Source: Dimorphilus gyrociliatus
Lineage: Eukaryota; Animalia; Annelida
Reading direction: 5' to 3'
NCBI GenBank assembly: GCA_904063045.1
Contig: CAJFCJ010000010.1
Coordinates: 62,001 to 126,000 of the forward strand
Length of the DNA: 64,000 nucleotides
Position numbers and translations under genes: made by a program. Below, one piece after another: positions 7,952 through 27,700 of this stretch. Within the stretch, counting starts at the first letter, position 1. Each line of letters opens with the position of its first letter. The notes under the pieces were generated by a model that was given only the letters and a program-made list of their open reading frames with translations, was not told where the DNA came from and did not search any database.

Positions 7952-8387
7952 TGCCTATCTGAAAAAAAAACGTGGGTAAGAGTGTGATTAACATAACATC
8001 GCTCATATTATCCTCTCTATAAGCAAAACAGGAAACAATATTAAACAAATCATTGATATATAAGAATATATTTTTGTATTTATTATAAACTGGAAAATAT
8101 ATCACCTATCAATGTAAATTCCAAAGTAAAATAATCTATTATTATTCAAGTTATCAATTCGCAAGAAAACCGAAAACTCTTCGTAAGTTAAAAACCTATT
8201 CCAACTTACGATGTCCATAAAAGAGCGGTTCTTATTAAAATAGCAAGAAACAAAAAATACTCTCTTGTCAAATGTATTGTTGACGAATGAAAGGTATAGA
8301 AAATATAAAAAGCATTTATTCGCTTACGAAGGTAAAAGCTTCTATCTAAAACTTGTGTAGACGGATAAAATCAATAAAAATATTGTC

Positions 8388-11300
8388 TTAGCCACTGCAC
8401 ATAACACAATTTTCCTTATTTTCCAATGAACACAAAATCGCTTGTTCTTCTCGATCGGCAGCAGTTTCCTCTTTTTTCTCCTTGCCTTCTTCAGATAAAG
8501 AAACAGACCTACGAATTTTACTTCTATCGACTGTCACTTGAACGGCACTTGCAGCTGGTCGAGATCTCAAATAATACATTCCAGTCTTCAATCCCAGTTC
8601 CCATCCTTTGAAGTGCATACTGGTCATCGTTGCGTAATTAGGAGCAGCAATATGAATATTTAATGATTGACTTTGATCGATAAATGCTCCTCTATCAGCT
8701 GCCATTCGTAGTATAACGCTTTGGGGTATTTCCCATACAGTTTTGTATATTTCCTTGAGCTCATCAGATATAGATGGTATGTTTTGAATTGAACCTCCAT
8801 TAGCAATCATTTGCTCTCGAACACTTGGATTCCATAAACCTAACTCAGTTAGATCCTTCAAAAGATGATGATTGACCACTTGAAATTCTCCAGATAAAAC
8901 ACGACGAGTGTAAATGTTGCTTGTATATGCTTCAAAGGATTCGTTATTTCCTAATATTTGACTGGTAGACGCTGTCGGCATTGGAGCAACTAATAGAGAG
9001 TTTCTTACGCCGTATCTAGTTAAAGTAAAAATAGGTTAGGCTTCCAACGTTCACATTTAACTTTTACGTACTTTTTGACATCATCTTTTAGAGCATTCCA
9101 GTCGTAACGATCAGATGGTTTAACGTTCCACATATCAAATTGAAATATCTATTTATACATATTTTATTCATTTCATTCTTATGCTTAGTTGTATATTAAT
9201 TAAGTAATACCAACCCCTTTACTCATTGGAGAACCTGCAAATGTTTCGTATGGCTCCTGTTCTTTAGCTAGTTTACAGCTAGTCTTAACAGCCGCATAAT
9301 AAATAGTCTCGAAGATCAATTTATTAACTTCTTGTGCTTCTTCACTGGCGTATGGAAGTCTCATCTTGATAAATGCATCTGCTAAACCTTGAACTCCAAT
9401 CCCAATTGGTCTATGGCGTTTATTAGATCTTTCAGCCTATATAAATATACAATATAAGTCTTTTTCATAGAAACTACCAAGAAATTTACCTCCGGCACAG
9501 GATAATAATTCACTTCTATAATCTTATTAAGATTTCTGACAACAACTTCCGTGACATAGATTAACTTGTCATAATCAAAAGTTTTATCTTCCTTAACGTA
9601 CATTGGTAATGCTAAAGATGCTAAATTACAAACAGCTGTCTCATTAGCATCACTATATTCAATGATCTCAGTGCACAAGTTACTACATTTTATGGTACCC
9701 AAATTTTGTTGATTCGACTTTCCATTGCATGCATCCTTGTAGAGCATGTAAGGTGTGCCAGTCTCAATTTGAGAGGTGATAATGGCTTGCCAAACTTTGC
9801 GTGCTGGTAAAGATTTTCTTCCTCGTCCTTCGCTTTCATAATACTCGTACAGCTTTTCAAATTCCTCTCCCCAAACATCTTCCAGTCCTGGGCACTCGTT
9901 TGGGCACATTAAAGTCCAATCGCCATTAGCCTTTATTCTTTTCATGAAAAGATCAGGAATCCAAAGAGCATAGAAAAGATCTCTAGCCCTTTCTTGCTCA
10001 ATTCCTCTATTTTTTTTCAAATCCAAAAAGCTAAAAATATCAGCATGCCACGGTTCAACATAGATTGCGAAAGCTCCAGGACGTTTATTTCCGCCTTGAT
10101 CAACATAGGCTGCTGTTTCATTATAAACTCTCAACATTCTTACTAGACCATTCGAAATTCCATTTGTCTGTATAAGTAAATAAAGATAGTGTAAATATCA
10201 TTTAGTAATTATGAAATGAATTCATAATTCACCCCAGCAATTCTACTTCCAGTTGCACGTATGCAATGAACGTTTAACCCGATTCCACCAGCCGATTGTG
10301 AAATAAGGGCACATTGGTGAAGTGTTTTATAAATTCCATCGATACTATCACTATATAAAAAAGCAAAATAAATCAGATAAATTGAATATTTGAATAAATT
10401 TATCAGTTTGACTTGTCTACCTGTGCATAGTTAACAGGAAACAACTTGATAGCTGAGGTCGATTCGTTGCAGCATTGAATAGAGTAGGAGTGGCATGAGT
10501 GAACCATTTTTCGGACAGAAGGTTATAAGTTTCGATTATGGACTTGACATCATTTTTGTGTATTCCAACTGCAACTCTCATCAAAAGATGTTGAGGTCTT
10601 TCGGCTACTTTTCCATTAATTCTTAACAAATAGGAACGTTCTAGAGTCTATTGAATGAAATGAGTAATTAGAAATAGGTTTACTAGCCCAAAAATTTCAC
10701 CTTGAATCCAAAATATGTATATTGATAGTCCCGATCGTATATAATTGCCGAATTCAAAGTGTCTGCATTCTCCTTTATAATTTCATAGCATTCTTTTGAA
10801 ATCATAGGACACCAAGTCTTATTTTTCGGATGAACATACTTGTATAAATCCGTCATAACCTCTGATAAATTAAAATGAAAAATTGTCATTAAATAACAAT
10901 AATGATTTAAATTTTAAATTTACCGCTAAAAACCTTCTTGGTCTCCTTATGTAAGTTTGAAATTGCTATTCTTGCAGCAAGTATTGCATAATCTGGATGA
11001 TTTACAGCCATTTGAGCGGCGGTTTCAGCTGCGTGATCATCTAACTCAACAGTTGTCATTTTATCTTTCATACTCTCAATAACTTTTCTCGTAATTACAA
11101 TCTATACAAGAAAAATACTTGATAGACAGAGCGATAAAAAGCATATTTAACTTACCGGATGGACAAAATTACGATTAAGTCCATACGATAACTTAACTAT
11201 TCTTGAAGTAATTTTGTCAAACATAACATCTTCCATCCTTCCATCTATGGGAAATAAAGCAATTTTACATTAAAAAAAAATGGCTAACAATAATACGTTG

Positions 11301-11413
11301 TCCCATTCCCGCCAAATTACATTAACACGGTATGCTTTTTTTGGCCCTATGAAGGTTACAAATAATTATTTACCTCTTTTAATAACGAATTTTGGTGGTT
11401 CAGTTGCGTCCAT
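8388..11413 (-). CDS. RRM1: Ribonucleoside-diphosphate reductase large subunit (class Ia)
   Basis: ATP cone (FVIKRDGR...FDKITSRI), SSCFLL, loop 2 [38 protein letters not shown] and C-terminal CVMCSG; many short introns; ATG at 11413. Confidence 0.97.
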
Positions 11414-11538
11414 ATTTTGAAGTTTATTAAAATCAGTCTTGTAAAAACGTTGGTAGCACGAGGTATCTCACCCAAATGAGCCGCTACGACAGTTACCTTT
11501 TGCGCCAAAATAGCTCATTGGCTACTAAGGTCACGTGA
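11306..11538. promoter_or_regulatory. RRM1 S-phase-type regulatory region: E2F sites, CCAAT box, E-box
   Basis: TTCCCGCCAAA at 11306-11316 (intron 1), GCGCCAAAA at 11502-11510, reverse CCAAT near 11517-11522, TCACGTGA at 11531-11538. Confidence 0.55.
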
Positions 11539-12274
11539 AAGAAGGGTTTAGTCTATGAACGCACTAAAAGTCTTTAATTGATTTTTTTATAAATACAATT
11601 TTTAAATGAAATTTTCATTAAAAAATAAGTATAATTTACGAAAACATCAAACACTTTGGAAGAGAACCCGATTCTTAAGAAAAATATTGTAAATGAGTGT
11701 TGAAGAAGATTTTTTACACAAACTATCAAAATATGAAATTTACCATTGCATAATACAACTAAAAACGGGAAAATTTCAAATTTTATCAAGGAAATTGTGT
11801 ATTTTATTAGTATGTTTAGGGGAAAAAACGACTTGTTTACACGAATTTAACATTGTTTTCCTAAGGATAAAAAGTTACAAAGGGCAAAGATTGCATCTCG
11901 TATAACATGTATAAGTTTACTGGTGCAAAATTATGATAAAAAATTAACGTAAATTTCTGAGCTCATTTATAGAAAAACGGATTATCTGCTGTTAGGCCAA
12001 CTAATTAATCCAATGTTTCACACACGTTTTGATATCTATCAAAATCTTCAGATAAGGCTCACACATCCGACGATTTATATTTCTGAGCTAACGAATGCGG
12101 AATACGTAACCCGGAAGCAGTACAGTATCATGTAAATAGGAGTATGATGACCATGTAAGAAAAGCTATCGAATGGCTATTACTCAAGGAAAATCTTCAAA
12201 TTAATACTTGAGACTGTTAATAGCATTTAAAATTACATTTTGTGTAAATATTTTAAATTAATATCAACAGTATT

Positions 12275-12524
12275 ATGGAAAAGATGGACATAATTCAACA
12301 TATAAACTGCCTACTTCTGCTCTTATCGCTATCTTCGTCGGACCTAGTTGTTAATGTTAAAAATAGTGGAGACGAAATAATGCAACAGAGGATAAGATCC
12401 AATTCTACTGAAGATGTTGTGACAACCTCTTACGAAAGAACGGATGGAGCATTAATTGATCACATCATCGATTTCAAAAATGTAAGTGTACCTATATCAC
12501 CCGTCTTTAAGAGTGCTAGAACTC

Positions 12525-15920: not shown

Positions 15921-18495
15921 ATGAATTTCGATTATCCACTAGTCTGTCGCAATGAGAAAGCATTTGACGAGTATCATGGTCAAAAGGTGCATTATTGTCT
16001 TGTTGATTTTCGTGCAATCTCTACTAATCTTTGTCGCTGAGAGCTGGTACAAAACTCTAATTAGGAATGCTATTACAAACTTAATCTGAACGATAAGCAA
16101 AGAGATAATAAGCGGTTGCATGAGATTTTATGCAAAATTCTTTCAAATATGAATAAACTACCAATTGACAGGAACACGAACATCATATTTATTATGTTTG
16201 TCTATTTTTATTTAGATAGCAGATCCGTATAGATGGCTTGAAGATCCTGATAGTAGCGATACAAAGACCTTTGTAGAAAATCAAAATAAAATTTCAGAAC
16301 CTTTTATTCAAGCTTATCCATTTAGAAAACAATTACACGATACGTAAGAATAATATTCTATACATAAGGCATTAGTATACAATAATTCACTATAAATTTA
16401 TATAGGATTAAGAAAATGTGGGATTATCCTAAATATGGATGTCCTAGAAAGAGAGGAGATAATTATTACTATTCTTACAATACTGGTTTACAGAATCAGA
16501 GGTACTCAACAAAAACTCGCATACCTAATATGGAAAAAACAGGAAAAAGTAATATTGTATCTCTTTTTAATATTTCAGTGTTATCTACTGTCAAAAGACT
16601 TTGGATAGCGAAGCAGAAGTTTTCTTTGATCCAAATACTCTATCAACTGATGGAACCGTTGCTCTCAGTTCAACGGCATTCTCGAAAGATAATAAGCACT
16701 ATGCATTTGGTTTAAGTGAACAAGGTTCAGACTGGCTAACGATAAAAGTTAAAGATGTTGCTACTAGAATTGATAAAGATGATTTACTTAAAAATGTGAA
16801 ATTTACCAGTCTTTCTTGGACGCACGATCATAAAGGGTTTTTTTATAATAGATACCCAAAGTCTGAAGGTAAAGCTGATGGAACAGAGACTGATATGAAT
16901 CTTAATCATAAGCTGTATTATCACTTTGTGGGAGATGATCAGTCTCAAGATGTTCTTGTTGCCGAATTTCCTGATAATCCAAAATGGATGATCGGCGCAG
17001 AAGTAACAGACGACGGACGTTACGTTGTTCTTTCGATTGCGGAAGGATGCGAACACGTTAATCGACTTTATTTCGTTGATTTAAAAGATCTCGGTGACAA
17101 GTCGATTAAAGAGTTTGGCAAAGTCTTGCCATATACTATAATTGTTGATAATTTTGATGCTGAATGGGAATATATCACAAATAATGGGACCATGTTTGTT
17201 TTTAGAACAAATAAGGATTCTCCAAGATCTAAATTAGTCACTATTGATATTTCTAAAGGCATATCGTCTTTAAAAGATCTCGTTCCTCAACACGAAAAAG
17301 ATGTTCTAGAGTGGAGTGCATGTGTAAGAGATGATTTGTTAATTCTTTGCTATATCCGTGACGTTAAAAACGTGTTGGAAGTAAGGGATGTAAAGACCGG
17401 TAAACTACTTAAAGATTTACCATTACCAATTGGGTCCATAACATCATTCGAAGGAAGAAAAGAGCAGAGTCATATGTTCTATGGATTTACTTCTTTTCTG
17501 GAACCAGGTATTATTTATCAAGTTGATTTTACGAAGCCCCAAAGCGAATGGATTCCAACAAGATGGAAACAAATCGTAGTTCCTAATTTAAAATCTGACG
17601 AGTTCGAAACAGAACAAGTATTTTACGAATCTAAAGATAAGGCGAAAATTCCCATGTTCATCGTCAAGCATAAGAACGTGAAAAAAGATGGAAAAGCCCC
17701 GGCTCTAGTTTACGTTTACGGTGGTTTTAACATATCGATCATGCCGAGTTTTAGCGTGTCCAGAATTGTTTGGATGTTGAAATGCGGTGGTATTTTAGCT
17801 GTGGCAAATATTCGTGGTGGAGGCGAATACGGCGAAGACTGGCATCATTTAGGAACGAAAGAAAAGAAATTTAACTGTTTCGACGATACGGCCTATGCTA
17901 CGAAGTATCTTTCAAATAATGGTTATAGTTCTAGTGATAGAATTGCAATTCAAGGAGGATCGAACGGTGGTTTAGTCGTATGCGCCACAGCAAATAGATA
18001 TCCTAGCGATTTCGCGGCTGTTATCTCTCAAGTTGGAGTTTTAGATATGCTCAAGTAAATTAAAATAAAATCATGTTTATGTATTATGTAATAACATGAA
18101 AAAAATGATACAGATTTCATAAATTCACCATTGGTCACGCCTGGACAACTGATTATGGTTGCGCGGATATTGAGGAAGATTTCAAGTATATAAAAGAATT
18201 TTCACCACTTCACTCAATTCCGTCCACTACTGCCTGTAGTAGATATCCATCAACTCTAATCTTAACTGCTGACCATGACGACAGAGTTGTACCACTTCAC
18301 AGTTTAAAATTCACAGCTGAACTTCAACATGTTCAAGGTGGTAATTCGAAGAAAAACAATAAACCACTAATAGCTTTAATCGATACCAAAGCTGGCCACG
18401 GAGGTGGTAAGCCAACTGGAAAAATCATTGAAGAATTGGTTAACGTCTATTCTTTCCTATCGTTGGTTCTACAAGGAGTCGAATGGAAAGATTAA
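15921..18495 (+). CDS. PREP: Prolyl endopeptidase (S9A); possible upstream in-frame start at 15810
   Basis: MNFDYP..., [19 protein letters not shown], beta-propeller region, [10 protein letters not shown], and catalytic GGSNGG, DHDDRV and AGHG; five exons, stop TAA at 18493-18495. Confidence 0.95.
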
Positions 18496-19889
18496 ATGAC
18501 TATTTTACAATATCGAATAAACATCGCACAAATAAAACCTAAAATCTCTTCAATTCCTTTTTTTTATCGAAAAAAAGTGTCCCCGTTTTCAGTGTCAGTT
18601 CTTCGTGTTGTCTTTTAATCTATATCTTATTCCTTGACTTTTGAACATTTTATCTAGGAAAACCTATCTTAATTAGTCAGCAATTATACAACATAGCAAC
18701 TAGGTGGCAAGCGTCGTTACTTTAATGTACATTAATCATATAGGCCAAATTTTCGTAGTTAATGCGACGACATAAGAAGTTTTTTAATGTACTTAATACA
18801 AATTAAGAAGAGTAAACTAAACTTTTTATACAAGTAGAAAGTAATCGATTAAGGGAAAAGAGATGGCGCCACGAGATAAAACGAATTTATGAGAGAGAAA
18901 AGCTGACACTCCTAGGTAATGGTTTGCTCTCAGATAGCAGAAATTATGACTCAGTTCGAATTATAAAAACAGCTTATATGCTGTAATTTGTAGTAATGAC
19001 AATTCATATTTATGTCTAACTGAATAATGATTGAAACGTTTGCAAGATTTTTCTACAAAATATGCCTTGCAATAACAGGCATTCTTCTGGGTATATATGA
19101 AAGGTTCGTATCTTATAAATCGTATATATATATAAATACATATATATTGCTAATGCGTAATGTTAACCCATATTGATTAATTTCATTGATTTTTTAAAAA
19201 TAAATTGGTTTGAATAGAGTATTACAGTCGTATTTAGAAAACTAGAACCTCTGATTTACACATTCGTTTTCAGCTGTAAAAAATTACTAACATTTGCATC
19301 TCTTCTTCTCTGTCTTGCTATTTTACAACTTCATTTGGCCTGTCTTCCTTTATCGTACTCTCTATACAGTGTTATATAGAATATAACCTATACACCATAT
19401 GTACTATATGCTTTTCTTTCTCACAATTAATCCCAAGCTTAACCTCTCCCTCTCTGTCTTTCTCCCACTCTCTCTCTCTCTCTTTTCCACTTACTAATTG
19501 ACAGACGGAGAGAGGATTGTGGTAATAAAGATGCTGTATATAGCATACAAGACCTGTCAGTTAGACTCTGTTGGTAATTTGCTATAAATTTGATTTACTT
19601 TTATACAAACACTTGTAAAAAAAAAAAATAACTAGAAAAAAGACGTAATGTTTAAAACTCTCATTATCATACAGTCCAATGTATGCTATCAGTTACTAAA
19701 TAGGTTATCTATCGGATTTTGATTCTATAGACAAATAAAAATAGAACAGCATATAATTCCTTATTGAGTGTTTTTTTTGGATAAAAATGATTCTAATTTT
19801 AAAAAAAAGATAAATAATAGAGAGAGAGGGTAAAGTCTTATCTAAACATAAAAATATCTTGATAACATTCCCTTTTTTATTCTTTTATA

Positions 19890-21144
19890 GCCTGTTTCGT
19901 AAGGATTTCTCTGAAAAGCCAATATTTTATCACTCCGATGAACCTGTACCAGTTATTCAGAATATTATAAAAAACGGATTCTTGTCAAAAACGTTTAGCC
20001 CTGTTTGGTGGGCTAGGAACGGTCATGTTCAAACTCTACTAACTGCTTTAAACGTGAATAAACCTACGGATATTTCTTTTAAACGAGAAATAATTAAATT
20101 ACCTGGTTAAATTTATTTTCTATTTATCTCTTTTTTAAATTAATAGCTATATCTCTTTCAGACGGTGGACAATTAGCTTTGGATTGGGGCCATGTTATAG
20201 ATAATCCTCATCTAGAGGGTGATGATATTTTACTAGTTCTTCCTGGTTTAACTGGAGCAGCTATAGATTATAGATCAATTGTTAAGTTAGGTTTACAAAG
20301 AAACTACAGAGTTGTTGTATTTAACAAAAGAGGCCATGGCGGACTAGAATTGACAACCGCAAAATTGCAGAGCTTTGGATATCCTTACGATGTACGTTTC
20401 GTTTTAGAAAATTTCAGAAAACGATTTAGAGAGCGTAAAATTCACGCTATCGGATTTAGTGCAGGCTCTGGGTTATTAGTATCCTACTTGGGATATTTTC
20501 CAGACGATCCAATTATAGATGGAGCAGTTGCAGTCTCTCCTGGCTACGACGCTGAACATTTACTTAAGATACTACCGAACTTTTACGCTTTTCTCATGCT
20601 AATGAAATTGAAATTTATGATTTGGCAGCACCGGTAATGACCTTATTATTATTATTATTATTAATTAAATAGAATAGGTAACTATAACTTTCGTTTTTTT
20701 TATTATTTCCATTACAGAAAAGTTTTGAAAAAAGCTGTGAACATGAGAAGGGCCGTTTCAACAAGCTGTTTTGAGGAATTTGAACAAGTAGTCTACGGTG
20801 CACCTAATGGATATAATGATATTAAAGATTATTGGAAGGAGAATAATCCAATAATGGCTCTAAAACACATTAAAATACCCGTTATGTGTATCAGCTCCAT
20901 GGATGATCCTGTTTGCGTTGGAGAAGTTGTAAAATTCGACTACTTCTACAGTAATCCACATTCTCTATTATGCGCAACTAAGAGAGGAGGTCATTGCGCT
21001 TTCTTCCACGGAAGTGAAATGAAAAGGTAGAGTATTAAGTAAACTAATTAATAGTTGCATACAATTTTCATTCCTTTACTTTAACCTAAAAATAGATGGG
21101 CAGAAGATATGGCTCTTGATTTCCTTCACCATATAAAGAATTAA
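19890..21144 (+). CDS. Alpha/beta hydrolase of the ABHD1/2/3/15 family, closest to ABHD15 (5' end not resolved)
   Basis: GHVQT, LVLPGLTG, VVVFNKRG, GFSAGSGLLVSYLG, SSMDDPVC, FYSNPH and GGHCAF; four exons seen, stop at 21142-21144. Confidence 0.8.
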
Positions 21145-21525
21145 TTTGATTAAGATAAAATAATATCTGAAAAAAAGAACAAAAAGCTGATTTTTTTTAA
21201 CTTTTGTTTCTTTTATGTTACGTTTGTAAAGATTCCAATGGATTCCGTTTATTTCTCGGCGCATAGAACAAGCATGGAGACGTTTTTTGTTTACTAGTCA
21301 TTTGATTTCTTTTCCGCTACTTATATTATATAATGAAGTGAATAAAAATACCATGTGTATATATTAATATAAATACTAATATATACATATATAATAAAGT
21401 CTTTCTTTGTTCACTCTCATACTTTACCAGCTTTCTTTTGTTTATATTTTTTGCACTGTTTTTTTTTATTTCTTAGCAATTAATGCAGATAAAGTTGATC
21501 ATAAATAAACATACAATACGTTCAT

Positions 21526-22659
21526 CTACCATTCATAAACCCATACATAGGTTTTAAATAAGGTTACGCTAAGTTTAACATCTCTATCAGACGAAGGAGC
21601 CATTTCGGGATAACAAAATCTTCTTCCACCGACGTACCAACAATCTGATTTTGGTGGTTTATAATAGCATCCATTCGCTCTGTCTTCCCCGCATCTCCAT
21701 AGGAAAGTCATATTGTTTTGAAAGATAATTGGATCCTTTTCGAAGAATTTATAAGCTACCGCTATTCCGCTGTGATCTATATAAGTTACTCCAGCGTTTT
21801 CAAAGTGATTGACTCCGGCATTGAAATAATAGGATGAAAGATAGAAATCTTCTGTTCCGGAAGACAATAGTTGTACATTACTCCAGTCATCGGAATCTAA
21901 CAATACTCGGTAACAAGCTTCTAAATATTCTAGATCTTTACTGCGACCGGCGAAAGCTACTTGAAAGACTATTCCAGATTTATTATTTACCTTAGCTATG
22001 GTGACATAATCATGGGGATTTAGCAATCCTGAAAAACATAACAAGTTTTAAACAGAAGTCCATCCAAATGTCACGTGATAAGACAATTTAAAAATAACAA
22101 TACCGTCTGTTTTGTAAAGTTTAAGTCGTGTATTGGCGGGTAATATAAGATCTCCAATGACAACCGGGTAATTTTCAACACCCTTAACTATATACCACAT
22201 AATACAACTGGCCGGTCCAGGAATTCTTACTGTAATTTTAATACTTCTACCAAAAGGAATTCTATAGGTGTTAAAGAAGGCACCTCCATTATGAGCTGCA
22301 TGACCAAATAAACTAGTGGCCCATGGGGCAAATTTGTCTTCGACAGCTGCAGTCGTATTTATTCCATGGGCGAAAAACATGTTAAAATCTAAACTCGGCT
22401 CCGTTTCTCCATCAATATACACATTGACAAACATGTTTTCATCCGTACAATGTAAACCTGCGATATAAGATTGTTCAGTTATAACACCGGGTCCTTTGTT
22501 GTACTCAAACATGACATTTTCAACCCAATTCCCTCTGATGTATGCCTCTTTTGTGCTGGTACCAAAGGTTTTCATTTTTTCGTTTACCTGGACTTTAGCA
22601 ATAGCGATGCTAAGTATAAAAAATAAAAGGGAAAATATATTTTTCATTTGTTGCTCCAT
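21526..22659 (-). CDS. Secreted DUF2961/GH172-like glycoside hydrolase, paralog A (352 aa)
   Basis: Exons 22659-22104 and 22028-21526 (75-bp phase-1 intron). Signal peptide, GPGVITEQ, VYIDGETEPS, FNTYRIPFGRSIKIT, YLEAC...SSGTEDFY, YKFFEKDPIIF and YVWVYEW. Confidence 0.78.
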
Positions 22660-23053
22660 TGCTGCTGCAATACAGAAAGATCCAGGTGGATGTCTACTAA
22701 AATACTTATATCTTCAATACACTTGTGTTTATCAATTTGTCACAATGCAGCTCAAGACTTGGAGAACTTTGATCTTTCGTAAATATGCTTAAAGCAACCA
22801 TTTTCAGTCTATAAATTAGTATAATATAGCAGATGAGAGAGTGGTCAACAGATATAGTTTTAGATTATAAACATTCAATTATTGTATTCACTTTATTATC
22901 AGTTAATTATTACTGACATTTTAACAATAGCTGCTATAAAAAAATATCTTTATATAGACTTTGAACCAATTGTTCATAATTAAAATTTAATTTCATGTTT
23001 AGTTCTTCCCTAGCCTTTAGTTTGATCACCAATTTATCTTTTCTTCTTTCTGT

Positions 23054-24187
23054 TTACCATTCATATACCCATACATATGTTTTAAAGAATGTTTCGCTTA
23101 AATCAAATCCTTTTTTTTCTTTTTCTATTTGTTCTTGTGGTGCTTGTTTAGGAAAGCAGTACTTTCTATTTCCATCTAACCAACAGTCTTTTTGAGGTGG
23201 TTTATAGTAACAACCATAGTCGACATTTTCTCCACATCTCCATACAAGCGTAATATTCTCGTGGAATATTACAGGATCTCTTTCAAAAAATTTATAGGCT
23301 ACTACTGATCCATGTAACCGGTTAATAAAAGTAACTCCTGCATTTTCGAAATGATTCACTCCAGCATTAAAGTATAATGCTGATAAGTATAAATCTTCTG
23401 TTCCTGATGATAATAGTTGCATATTTTCCCAATTATCCGAATCGATTAGTAATCTATAACAACTTTCTAGAAATTGTAAATCTTTACTATTAGCCGAAAT
23501 GGTCATTTGAAAAACAATCCCTGACTTCTTTTGAATCTTTAATATGTTAACATATTCTTCTGGTGCAAGAAAATCTATTAAAAATAACAATTATCAAATA
23601 TCGGTAAGAACTTGATATCTATTAAATATTTGCTTACCTTCCGTTTTGTAAACTTTCAACCTGGCTGAAGGAGGCAATTCGAAATCTCCAACGACAATTG
23701 GTAGATTTTCGACGCCTCTAACAATATACCATATTGCACACTCTGGTCCTGGCCTTTGAAATGTAATTTTAATATTCTTCCCAAAAGGTATTCGATAGGT
23801 ATTAAAATAACCTCCTCCACGGTGAGCTGTATGTCCAAACCTACTTGTTGCCCAGGGAGAGAATTTATCTTCTACGTCATTCGTCATATTAACTGCGTGA
23901 GCAAAGAACATATTATAATCTAAGCTAGGTGTTTTTTCACCGTCAATGTAAATGTTTATGTGTAAAGTAGGATCGGCACAGCCATTATTCCCAGAAATAA
24001 ATTGTTCGGTAATTACTCCGGGTCCTTTTTCATATCTAAACATTACATTTTCAATGTTATGGCCGTATAAAACTGCTTTTTTAACACTATGAGAGAAACT
24101 TTTCAAATTTTTATTAAACTTAACAGTTAAGTGTATTGGACTAATTAAGGAGAGCAGAATTGCCAAAATTATTCTCAAGTGATGCAT
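23054..24187 (-). CDS. Secreted DUF2961/GH172-like glycoside hydrolase, paralog B (356 aa)
   Basis: Exons 24187-23638 and 23574-23054 (63-bp phase-1 intron at the same position as paralog A). Signal peptide, GPGVITEQ, IYIDGEKTPS, FNTYRIPFGKNIKIT, FLESC...SSGTEDLY, YKFFERDPVIF and YVWVYEW. Confidence 0.78.
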
Positions 24188-24779
24188 TATTCTTCTTTTT
24201 TCAATCAAAAAAAAACTGGTAGTAGTACTATTTTCTTAGAAAGGGCGGCAAAAAGAACTTCCTACACACGCATAAAATTTAATCATAATCAATTAAAATG
24301 TTCGACCAATAGGACTATTTGATGAAAGCGTTAAAAACTCTCCAAACAAAGAATACAGTTGTTTTTCAGTGGACAAAAACTAATTATATGAATCTATTTT
24401 TAAAAAAGAGAAATCACGTGATACCCCTCCCATAAGGTAAAATAAAGTTTGTTCTCTCCAAGAACAAATATGTAAATGAAAGAACAAAGATAGCAGTGAT
24501 AACCGAAAAAAGAGAGTATAAGTGATGTAGATAGAAAAAACGAAAAAGGAATGATAAATCTATTAATAAAAAAAAGAAGAGGAATGCAAAAAGTGACAAT
24601 AGAACGTTTGTTATTCGTTTACCATTACGCCGATACTTGATACTTTTTTTCGTAGGCTATCACGAGTGTATTAGGCAGTCTTCTTTAAAAAGTAAAACAA
24701 ACTGTAAATAGGAGTTGAAAGATAGTAAATAATCTTTCATTGAATAAATATAGAATGAGATATGACTATGTTTTTTTAG

Positions 24780-27700
24780 ATTATTTAGAATGGTGGAAGG
24801 ATTAAGAGACAGTAAAAATTCCTCTATTTGGATGATGGACTGTAGCAGTGTTATAGTTAAAAAACGTCATGATTATATATAGTACTTAGTCCAATAAGTA
24901 TTTCCATCGTTGAACCGGTTCATTAATTTAACTCATTGTTTTATGAATTAAGGTAAACGTATAGAGGGGAGACAGGCAGTGGAAGAGATGATAGAATTTT
25001 ATACTTGGGTTTTGAAATAATGAAAATATCCTGCTTACTATAGGCTTTAAATATTTCACACAGGAATGAGACCACTATTGATCGTTTCCCATTCAAGACT
25101 GTCACGCATGAATTCTTTTGGCGACTTCAATATATACGCAGTCAGAATTGGGCGTGTTGTGTTTCAAAACGCAACGATTTCTATTTAATCCTTCTACTTT
25201 GGTAAGTCAAAAAAAAAAGTTTTTTCCAAATTTTCTCTATAAAAATCTAAATCTATAACAACGATCAAACAATATTTAATGCCGAAAACGTGCCTAGATT
25301 TGAGAAAAATATCTTCTTCTTCTAATATAATATACGCTCCATTCAAAGTAGCTAGGCAAACAGAGAGGGTAAAATAAACGTGGCACTGCCCACGAGCAGA
25401 TTCATTCCTCCACTGGATTTCATTATGGAAGTAATTTGAGCCTACTGCCATTACTATTTTTTCACTATTAGCTAGTTTTTGTTTTAATATAAATTTGCTT
25501 ATGAATATAATCTAATTGTTTATCAACGTCAGGAACAAGAAGTAAGAATGCAGTTTAGCGTGGACGACGTAAGACAAATAGTATGGAGTTCAACACTATA
25601 TAGTCCACATGATATCGTCAGTCAAATTTTTCCTCTATTTGTCAAAATTGAGAGCGGCAGTGATGAAAACTTAAACTTGAAACCTAATCAGGTTAAACTG
25701 ATACATTCCTTAGTATTACAACCGATATGATTCATTTTTGTATATTCACCTATATATAGGTAATACGTTTAGAAAAATATGACAAGCAAAAGAGGATATT
25801 AATTAAGGACCAACGTAGTAGACATCTAACTGTACCGAGGAATTTTCCGATGAAATTCGTGGTAAAAAATTCTCATACTCTAAACAGTAAGAAGAAGAAA
25901 AGTAAGTCTCTTAGTTTTTTTAATCCTATATTTCATTCCATATCTTTCTCGTTCATACCAAAATGGTTTACAATATATTATTATTCTCATATTGTAAGTC
26001 ATTAACGCTTTGTCACTTCCTTTTTCTCGCTTCCACTTTTCTTGTTTTTTAATTATTCTTTAGATATTAACGAAATTTTGATAATGGTATTTCCCTTCTT
26101 TAGTTAAATATGTTAAAATTGCTATGAATCGTCAACTTTCTTTTTAAGCGAAGACTATAAATGCCAGCTTTTTCTTTAGATAGATTTTTTTATTATTATG
26201 TATATAAATTTTTTTTTAAAAAAAAATCCAATCATTCTCAAATTTTTTCTTTTTGTACTCCACGTTTTCAAGAAATCAACCTGAAATCCCTTATTTACAC
26301 TTATAATAAGCCTATTGCGAATTTCTTTATAGGCCTGATGGCAATCTGTGTAACAGTACAGACAACAAAAAAATCTTTTTCAACGGCTATAAGAAAGTCA
26401 AGAAAATAGAGATATTAGTTAATGTTTATGTTCAATATGGATTAGCAATATTTGATCGGCCTTATTCGATCTAAATACCCTCCTTTATCCTGAAATTAAC
26501 ACTACTAACCTTATCGAATATCTCAATATAAAATCAGATCACGTGAATTGTATGAATAATAAAAAGCTTTGCTATTCTTTTTTGTTTTTCAACAGCTTTG
26601 AAGCAATTTAAAGGTGCTAAGTTAAAATATATAATACGTCAATATTTTAATGGAATACAACCCCTTTTATTGGATTTTGAGTATACTGATCCATGGAAAT
26701 TTAAAATTGGAAGTGAAATAACTAATAGTAGAGAATTTGGTTCAATATTTTTAGAGACGATTAATACATCATGGGGACCAGTTAGTCCAAAGATAACCGA
26801 ACACTTTCTAAAAGGACATTTCCTGACTCGAGGTAAAATTCTTAGTTTAAATCTAGAGCATTTTAAAATATATAAAGCACGTTTAATACTTGATTGTTGA
26901 ATCGAAAAAGTAGTTCTTCAAAGCCTCTAACTCTTTATTTTGCTTTTGAGAAGAGGACTATTTATACTTTCTGTTATTTGTTAAATTTTTTTTTTATTAC
27001 TATTCAAAAGTTTATTTTTGTTAGAAAAATCATGAATAATAAATGTTAACGTTTATTGTTATTTAAGTAATTGTAATTGTTGCTGTTGTACTGTAAAATC
27101 TCAATATATATATAAATATGTGCACATAATAAATATTTCTATTATTTTTAGAATATTTCGTCATCACCGATAGAAGACCAATAGCTATACCTACAACTTG
27201 CAACCTAAAGTTGAGGGTTGCTGAGGGCTTTTTGGGAGACGAGAGCGGACTTAAATGGAAAGAATTTCAGGAATATGCTAGAAGGCAAATTAGTAGATCG
27301 CTTAGAAGTAATTTTTTTACGGATGATGGAACCATGGGTAAATAATTGATTCATTAGCTTAATGCTGATTCGAGAAGTATAGCTTTTTTAATAGACATTT
27401 TCTGTTAAATAGATATTCTTATTCCCGATATGACATCTTTGCCAAAGCATTTAAATTACGATTTCTCCGACAACGAATCGACCACAACAATATTCAGTGA
27501 ACAAACTCAGTCGGGAATTACCAATGGATCCCAAAAGATGTTCAACTCCTACAATACAAATGGATCAGCTGTAGTCCATTCTTTAGATGAGGCCACCAAT
27601 GAAATGGCAATACTGACTGTAGAAAGTGAAAAAGTTAGAGTTGACGAAGATAACAATGATGTTACTTTTGGTACAATGAAAAGTAGAAAATTTGAGGAAC

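Follow-up and report, generated by a model that had tools for sequence, protein, structure and literature searches.

A tandem pair of expressed, conserved genes for secreted GH172 (DUF2961) proteins in the annelid Dimorphilus gyrociliatus

What do two adjacent genes of an annelid encode when their translations carry the motifs of DUF2961, the Pfam family of glycoside hydrolase family 172 (GH172)? The genes, here called A and B, lie in a stretch of 64,000 nucleotides from Dimorphilus gyrociliatus (GenBank assembly GCA_904063045.1, contig CAJFCJ010000010.1, positions 62,001 to 126,000 of the forward strand), and this whole stretch is referred to below as the window. GH172 was defined in 2021, and to our knowledge its studied members are all bacterial and act either on alpha-D-arabinofuranosides, such as those of mycobacterial arabinan, or on alpha-D-fructofuranosides. 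An earlier note, made from the letters of the window, had read A and B as secreted paralogs of this family that could be domesticated enzymes for digesting, or defending against, bacterial D-arabinan or fructans. We show here, by profile and by fold, that both are members of GH172, and the pair are genuine, expressed and conserved animal genes for secreted GH172 proteins.

Genes A and B stand in tandem on the minus strand, A from 24187 to 23054 and B from 22659 to 21526, and the limits that the earlier note had set for the pair were exact, 24187 being the first base of the gene A ATG and 21526 the last base of the gene B stop codon. The parts of the two genes are as follows.

23638 to 24187, minus strand: gene A exon 1, encoding the signal peptide and the first jelly-roll domain (GH172_1st), placed by its open reading frame and ATG
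23575 to 23637, minus strand: gene A intron, 63 nt, phase 1, GT..AG (CT..AC on the plus strand), excised exactly in transcript contig X2
23054 to 23574, minus strand: gene A exon 2, encoding the second jelly-roll domain (GH172_2nd) with the predicted catalytic residues, and the stop codon
22660 to 23053, minus strand: spacer of 394 nt from the gene A stop to the gene B ATG, spanned unbroken by contig X2
22104 to 22659, minus strand: gene B exon 1, encoding the signal peptide and the first jelly-roll domain, placed by Pfam, an AlphaFold2 (AF2) model and VIA-align
22029 to 22103, minus strand: gene B intron, 75 nt, phase 1, GT..AG, excised in transcript contigs X1 and X2
21526 to 22028, minus strand: gene B exon 2, encoding the second jelly-roll domain with the predicted catalytic residues, and the stop codon

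With 356 codons in gene A and 352 in gene B, the predicted proteins are about 350 residues long. Here and in what follows, searches, alignments, fold models and substitution counts were made exon by exon, each exon on its own. The two introns interrupt the same codon, in phase 1, after the aligned codons KTE/KTD, and A and B are 56% identical over exon 1 and 63% over exon 2, which bears out the proposal that they are paralogs with one common intron. The motifs on which the family assignment had been based are all present in the translations (GPGVIT, IYIDGE..PS, FNTYRIPF, SGTED and AYKFF..DP..F), as is an LE[AS]C Glu that lies 23 residues before the Glu of GTED.

Both genes are expressed. A contig of 3134 nt from a public run (X2) covers 21453-24350 and continues beyond, with both introns excised at the predicted borders and 0 base differences from the window; the type of its library is not on record, and because two GT..AG introns are exactly excised it is in practice complementary DNA. 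From an independent RNA library, a coral metatranscriptome of a separate study, comes a contig of 383 nt (X1) in which the gene B intron is likewise excised, with 1 base different.

These two contigs carry some further detail. Beyond gene A, the spacer and gene B, X2 reaches ∼374 nt upstream of 24350, a span that could mean that the two genes are transcribed together or by read-through, or that the transcript of a divergent neighbor overlaps theirs, and the contig cannot separate these. The spliced gene B fragment in X1 corresponds to 21932-22387 of the window and its single difference is T>C at 21972; therefore the coral sample contained living Dimorphilus gyrociliatus or a very close relative of it.

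Family membership was examined with profiles. Against the Pfam profile PF11175 (DUF2961; cut-off 27 bits), exon 2 matches profile positions 110-220 in gene A (E 9e-15, 55.2 bits) and lies within positions 109-220 in gene B (E 8.8e-16, 58.6 bits). The corresponding figures for exon 1, which come from the older, single DUF2961 model, are positions 4-69 in gene A (E 5.6e-5, 23.2 bits) and 3-72 in gene B (E 4.5e-6, 26.8 bits). The newer Pfam divides the family into PF28588 (GH172_1st) and PF11175 (GH172_2nd, formerly DUF2961). Given that the orthologs of exon 1 and exon 2 in a sister species bear the PF28588 and PF11175 labels respectively (P0047, the ortholog of gene A exon 1, bears PF28588), the intron marks the border between two jelly-roll domains. 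Single-sequence searches with the exons against solved structures gave nothing relevant, and the GH172 structures were reached by profiles only: a full-length profile of the subfamily to which A and B belong matched all four solved GH172 proteins over both domains, with E-values of 4.6e-15 for 4kq7, 2.9e-14 for 8ah3, 4.3e-10 for 8ic8 and 6.1e-9 for 7v1v. NCBIfam returned 0 matches. The assignment to DUF2961/GH172 made from motifs is thus upheld by the Pfam profile for all four exons, and by comparison of fold with the solved GH172 structures.

In the fold comparison, the AF2 model of gene B exon 2 (predicted local distance difference test score, pLDDT, 89.5) aligned by VIA-align to the fructofuranosidase alphaFFase1 (7v1v) with Z 15.0 and a root-mean-square deviation of 1.9 Å over 124 residues, within chain residues 215-363, followed by 8ic8 (Z 14.8), 8ah3 (10.9) and 4kq7 (10.8), with a viral capsid jelly roll next at 9.0. 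The model of gene B exon 1 (pLDDT 83.2) opens with a helix over residues 2-19 that corresponds to the signal peptide, and its best matches are 8ic8 (Z 11.8, chain residues 11-197) and 7v1v (Z 10.3); this match is less distinct, as capsid jelly rolls score Z 10.2 and below. In these models, then, exon 2 matches the second jelly roll of 7v1v and exon 1 the first of 8ic8, in keeping with the double jelly roll of GH172. The best profile matches among solved structures, the exo-alpha-D-arabinofuranosidase DgGH172c of Dysgonomonas gadei (8ah3) and BACUNI_00161 (4kq7), have the same double jelly-roll fold. They differ from A and B in being bacterial, in an identity of only ∼15-19% and in a C-terminal extension for the hexamer, which A and B lack; A and B in turn add a signal peptide, N-glycosylation sites and a Cys-rich hairpin. 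ExoMA1 of Microbacterium arabinogalactanolyticum (8ic8), also an exo-alpha-D-arabinofuranosidase, is the top structural match to exon 1 and the second to exon 2. Its active site lies between the subunits of a basal trimer; unlike A and B, it assembles into a dodecamer via loops and belongs to an actinobacterial D-arabinan cluster, and in sequence it is only distantly related.

Two of these enzymes allow the active site to be placed by alignment. In alphaFFase1, mutagenesis identified E291 as the nucleophile and E270 as the acid/base, and the -1 subsite is lined by D292, W267, W298 and, from the neighboring subunit, Y187 (PMC8605356). For DgGH172c, Ala substitution of E233 or of E254 left no activity or almost none, and D255, the next residue, is called important (PMC10115798). 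In hidden Markov model (HMM) alignments, E291-D292 of alphaFFase1 and E254-D255 of DgGH172c match the E-D of SGTED. An I/L-D-G stretch, aligned to I277 in 7v1v and I240 in 8ah3, sits 7 residues past the LE[AS]C Glu, the same offset as from E270 and E233, and the 8ic8 alignment reaches the LEAC Glu directly, as the first Glu of EGEIKFY...GTGTED, so that the ExoMA1 sequence aligns with both Glu residues of A and B. HMM alignments, offset and 8ic8 alignment therefore point to E222, E245 and D246 in gene B and E220, E243 and D244 in gene A as the predicted catalytic residues, encoded as follows.

21919 to 21921, minus strand: gene B Glu222 (LEAC), predicted acid/base, aligned to E270/E233 and to the Glu of EGEIKFY in 8ic8
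21850 to 21852, minus strand: gene B Glu245 (SGTED), predicted nucleophile, aligned to E291/E254 and followed by Asp246
23465 to 23467, minus strand: gene A Glu220 (LESC), predicted acid/base, in the column of gene B Glu222
23396 to 23398, minus strand: gene A Glu243 (SGTED), predicted nucleophile, in the column of gene B Glu245 and followed by Asp244

The two Glu residues that had been singled out earlier are thus, by alignment, the counterparts of the catalytic pairs E270/E291 of alphaFFase1 and E233/E254 of DgGH172c, and the aspartates D292 and D255 are matched as well. The spacing of the two is 23 residues in A and B against 21 in alphaFFase1. Over 60 eukaryote-type and bacterial relatives the Glu-Asp of SGTED is invariant, and at least 90% retain the LEAC Glu. 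Of the other subsite residues, W298 of alphaFFase1 aligns to a conserved Tyr in S-x-Y-Y-F, and Y187 may correspond to the conserved W-Y of MWYIVKG, in an alignment of low confidence.

That both paralogs begin with signal peptides, as had been proposed, agrees with the hydrophobic N-terminal stretch present in each protein, MHHLRIILAILLSLISPIHL and MEQQMKNIFSLLFFILSIAIA, whose strongest 12-residue Kyte-Doolittle mean is 2.79 in both, and with the N-terminal helix of the gene B model. Two N-x-S/T sequons occupy the same positions in A, in B and in both orthologs of the sister species. Near the C-terminus, both proteins carry the cysteine pattern RCGE..GC..DC..FC in the following stretches.

21613 to 21693, minus strand: gene B Cys-rich stretch, exon-2 residues C112, C120, C129 and C138
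23156 to 23236, minus strand: gene A Cys-rich stretch, exon-2 residues C113, C121, C130 and C139

In the gene B model, C129 and C138 flank a beta-hairpin (129-132/135-138). The first Cys of the pattern is common to the whole subfamily, bacteria included, and the last two occur otherwise only in the nearest relatives (P0003, P0004 and P0006). The predicted signal peptide, conserved N-glycosylation sites and Cys pairs would fit secretion. In alphaFFase1 there is no secretion signal (PMC8605356).

How old is the pair in animals? In a second species, a Logan contig (L001) also has both genes in tandem, split at the identical intron site, and after them come the alpha/beta-hydrolase and prolyl oligopeptidase genes known from the window. 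Between A and B and these sister orthologs, synonymous differences are saturated over all four exons (pS 0.70-0.79) and nonsynonymous ones are few (pN 0.125-0.167); strong purifying selection has acted on each copy since a time that predates the species split. The second domain was placed in a maximum-likelihood tree of 71 rows and 164 columns, 39 of the rows bacterial; there A groups with sister A (100/96), B with sister B (100/86) and all four together (100/99), and the nearest relatives of this four-gene group are P0003, P0004 and P0006 (98/96), which have the Cys-rich stretch in common with it. A single branch, with support 99/93, separates the 39 bacterial rows from all other (non-GTDB) rows. 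Other relatives, at 35-50% identity, lie on plainly eukaryotic contigs with genes in exon-sized pieces, such as L048, with a Death domain and an NDK7 gene, and L004, with a ZBED/hAT transposase. Relatives with introns of their own were found in four other eukaryotic contigs, and at least one eukaryotic contig is metazoan; in L048, L049 and L050 these introns stand at positions other than that of the A/B intron. A search with the 204-residue open frame around gene A exon 1 returned further relatives, bacterial ones included, and no annotated protein of this genome.

These data bear on whether the pair could have come from bacteria by recent horizontal transfer, or from bacterial contamination of the assembly. 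Bacteria account for most GH172 proteins (PMC8812541), and the bacterial relatives match the architecture of A and B from the signal peptide through to the final YVWVYEW. A root placed with a single distant canonical DUF2961 falls among the Acidobacteriota and makes the eukaryote-type clade a derived one within bacterial diversity, a weak point in favor of transfer; with 10 changes per column the outgroup branch is far too long, and we distrust this root. Against a recent bacterial source, the introns are spliced, the G+C content over the pair (∼0.33) matches the flanking sequence, and the neighbors are animal genes. The rest of the window holds, in exon-sized pieces, a rhodopsin-type G-protein-coupled receptor (GPCR), ribonucleotide reductase, acyl-CoA dehydrogenase, prolyl oligopeptidase, alpha/beta-hydrolase, TRIM-NHL and Argonaute, and the GPCR, TRIM-NHL, Argonaute and prolyl oligopeptidase genes are all split by introns; the window is animal DNA. 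The tandem pair and its neighbors are kept in a second species at saturated synonymous distance, intron-bearing relatives stand in the four other eukaryotic contigs, and the tree that the earlier note had called for puts the worm genes outside the bacterial rows (99/93), together with the sister-species orthologs. We accordingly give recent transfer or contamination almost no credence; spliced introns, animal neighbors, conserved gene order and the separate clade rule it out. The description of the genes as domesticated, in the sense of a special or recent acquisition, is not supported either, since their clade occurs in several other eukaryotic contigs and stands cleanly apart from the bacterial members. 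Any transfer would be ancient and common to many eukaryotes; the eukaryote clade may have a single ancient origin, whether it was acquired by transfer or inherited vertically.

The bacterial side of the subfamily offers a view of the setting in which such genes occur. We collected 43 bacterial loci whose members have the same length and layout as A and B: ∼330 residues, a signal peptide, an LKTFGTxGKE start, SSG[TLM]ED and a YVWVYEW end. They come from Acidobacteriota, Planctomycetota, Verrucomicrobiota, Bacteroidota and Armatimonadota, and bear signal peptides or lipoprotein boxes. With A and B they share length, architecture and motifs end to end, at 29-39% identity over exon 2; they differ in having no introns, in mostly carrying Leu or Met for the Thr of G-T-E-D and in lacking the last Cys pair. 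The genes that adjoin them are for the most part carbohydrate-active, and encode GH116 (L028), an apiosidase-like protein and GH43 (L022), a GH78 rhamnosidase (L011), a GH29 fucosidase (L037), GH31 (L006), GH38 (L016), SusD and TonB-dependent receptors (L030, L043, L012) and a canonical DUF2961 (L012). One recognizable D-arabinan or fructan cluster was not found around the bacterial members; many different glycosidases adjoin them instead. The neighborhoods thus support a glycosidase role for the subfamily without pointing to a single substrate.

Two of these loci have arrangements of their own. In a Terriglobia genome (L012, 2446-4709) a canonical DUF2961 (E 2.4e-83 to PF11175) comes immediately after a YVWVYEW-subfamily protein, and therefore one bacterium keeps both DUF2961 types side by side. 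In Snuella sedimenti (L028, 4-3420) the subfamily member sits after a GH116 gene, an assignment made at family level; subfamily 4 of GH116 takes in the exo-beta-D-arabinofuranosidase of D-arabinan clusters (PMC10509167).

Given this combination of family, predicted catalytic residues and likely secretion, we think it probable that A and B are paralogous, expressed animal genes for secreted GH172 exo-glycosidases that remove a furanoside-type sugar from the microbial or algal glycans which the animal ingests. In each protein a signal peptide would precede two jelly-roll domains, each encoded by its own exon, and by analogy with the studied members the protein would be an anomer-retaining exo-glycosidase, in which the Glu of GTED would attack the anomeric carbon and the Glu of LE[AS]C would act as acid/base, in a pocket that probably forms between the subunits of a trimer. 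The protein would be released into the secretory pathway, the gut lumen or a lysosome-like compartment; a retaining exo-glycosidase of this kind is the most likely function.

Several observations weigh against this proposal. Structural-alignment identity to the studied enzymes is only 13-19%. The A and B proteins stop right after the last strand (YVWVYEW), without the C-terminal helix that builds the alphaFFase1 hexamer, which encloses an internal cavity. The fold models cover single exons, each alone, and that the two Glu residues would meet in one pocket is inferred from alignment to solved structures. W267 of alphaFFase1, three residues before the acid/base Glu and a contributor to the -1 and +1 subsites, is not kept: its place is taken by a variable residue, Glu or Gln, with Tyr or Phe one position later, and the canonical DUF2961 of L012 has W-F-G-E against x-[YF]-L-E in the A/B subfamily. 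Finally, we know of no member of the subfamily, bacterial or eukaryotic, that has been assayed. Because W267 is not kept, the sugar pocket may differ, and from the aligned residues it likely does differ in part from that of the studied enzymes.

The absence of this tryptophan could also be read as a sign that the GH172 fold was kept for sugar binding or for a structural role, as in a lectin or a capsid-like assembly, with no hydrolysis. Jelly rolls are common in lectins and capsids, and capsid proteins reach Z 9-10 against both models. This reading has to face the invariance of the GTED Glu and Asp in 60 relatives, the retention of the LEAC Glu by at least 90% of these, and the strong purifying selection on the orthologs since the species split, all of which are hard to explain without catalysis, and we regard it as unlikely.

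If the proteins are catalytic, their substrate might instead be the animal's own glycans, with active GH172 enzymes working in the secretory pathway, the extracellular matrix or the cuticle. The proteins are secreted, and several animals retain the family next to housekeeping genes unrelated to it, such as NDK7 in L048 and L053. We know of no animal glycan that contains alpha-D-arabinofuranose or alpha-D-fructofuranose, however, and the bacterial relatives sit in nutrient-acquisition loci. In marine stramenopiles, moreover, a DUF2961 orthogroup ranks, together with digestive enzymes, as one of the predictors of phagotrophy (PMC8163842), which ties the domain in protists to that mode of feeding. 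An own-glycan substrate therefore seems to us improbable, to about the same degree as the lectin-like role.

Returning to exo-glycosidases that act on ingested glycans, alpha-D-arabinofuranoside is, by analogy only, the best lead to the substrate. The earlier proposal of D-arabinan or fructan rests on analogy with the studied enzymes and is only a lead, because one sugar-pocket Trp of those enzymes is not kept. A broader possibility, which we put forward tentatively and as more doubtful than the digestive role itself, is that an old GH172 furanosidase, secreted and catalytically intact, may survive in many animals from cnidarians to annelids and cut alpha-D-arabinofuranose-type sugars from bacterial surface glycans, for example actinobacterial arabinan. 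If true, this would be an unrecognized animal class of digestive or antimicrobial enzyme, directed at a sugar that animals are not known to make, and if microbial furanosides are cut at all, the activity would be new among the enzymes with which animals digest or fight bacteria.

The presence of DUF2961 in animals is itself not new: Pfam labels such proteins automatically, and papers have already put them on record. UniProt held 205 eukaryotic DUF2961 proteins in the survey of Krupovic et al., 77.5% of them fungal, and the same paper mentions a Dimorphilus gyrociliatus DUF2961 protein in a long fusion with ArfGAP-type domains (PMC8812541), which is of the same Pfam family but unlike the compact, secreted A and B. 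Gene counts of 1-14 in seven cnidarians are given in the Hydra viridissima genome paper (PMC7642931). These animal and protist records are counts or passing mentions, without gene structure, active-site analysis or function, and our search of the full-text literature found no functional study of any animal member, in agreement with the earlier note. What is added here is mainly a clean, well-documented case, since the family assignment is automatic and the animal presence already recorded; with a full predicted catalytic triplet in a eukaryote-wide clade, the pair offers a testable entry point to the role of the family outside bacteria.

A few observations concern the surroundings of these genes. 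Rfam and tRNA scans of the window were empty, and upstream of gene A, in 24187-26900, only short open frames of at most 100 residues were seen. On the other side of the pair, the order of the prolyl oligopeptidase and alpha/beta-hydrolase genes at 16601-21030 of the window is that of L001 at 8040-12512, and the gene order around the locus is therefore conserved. In two other contigs, L048 (6538-8846) and L053 (1551-4395), a GH172 gene stands head-to-head with a gene for an NDK7-type nucleoside diphosphate kinase, so that gene order is conserved in a lineage other than the worm's as well.

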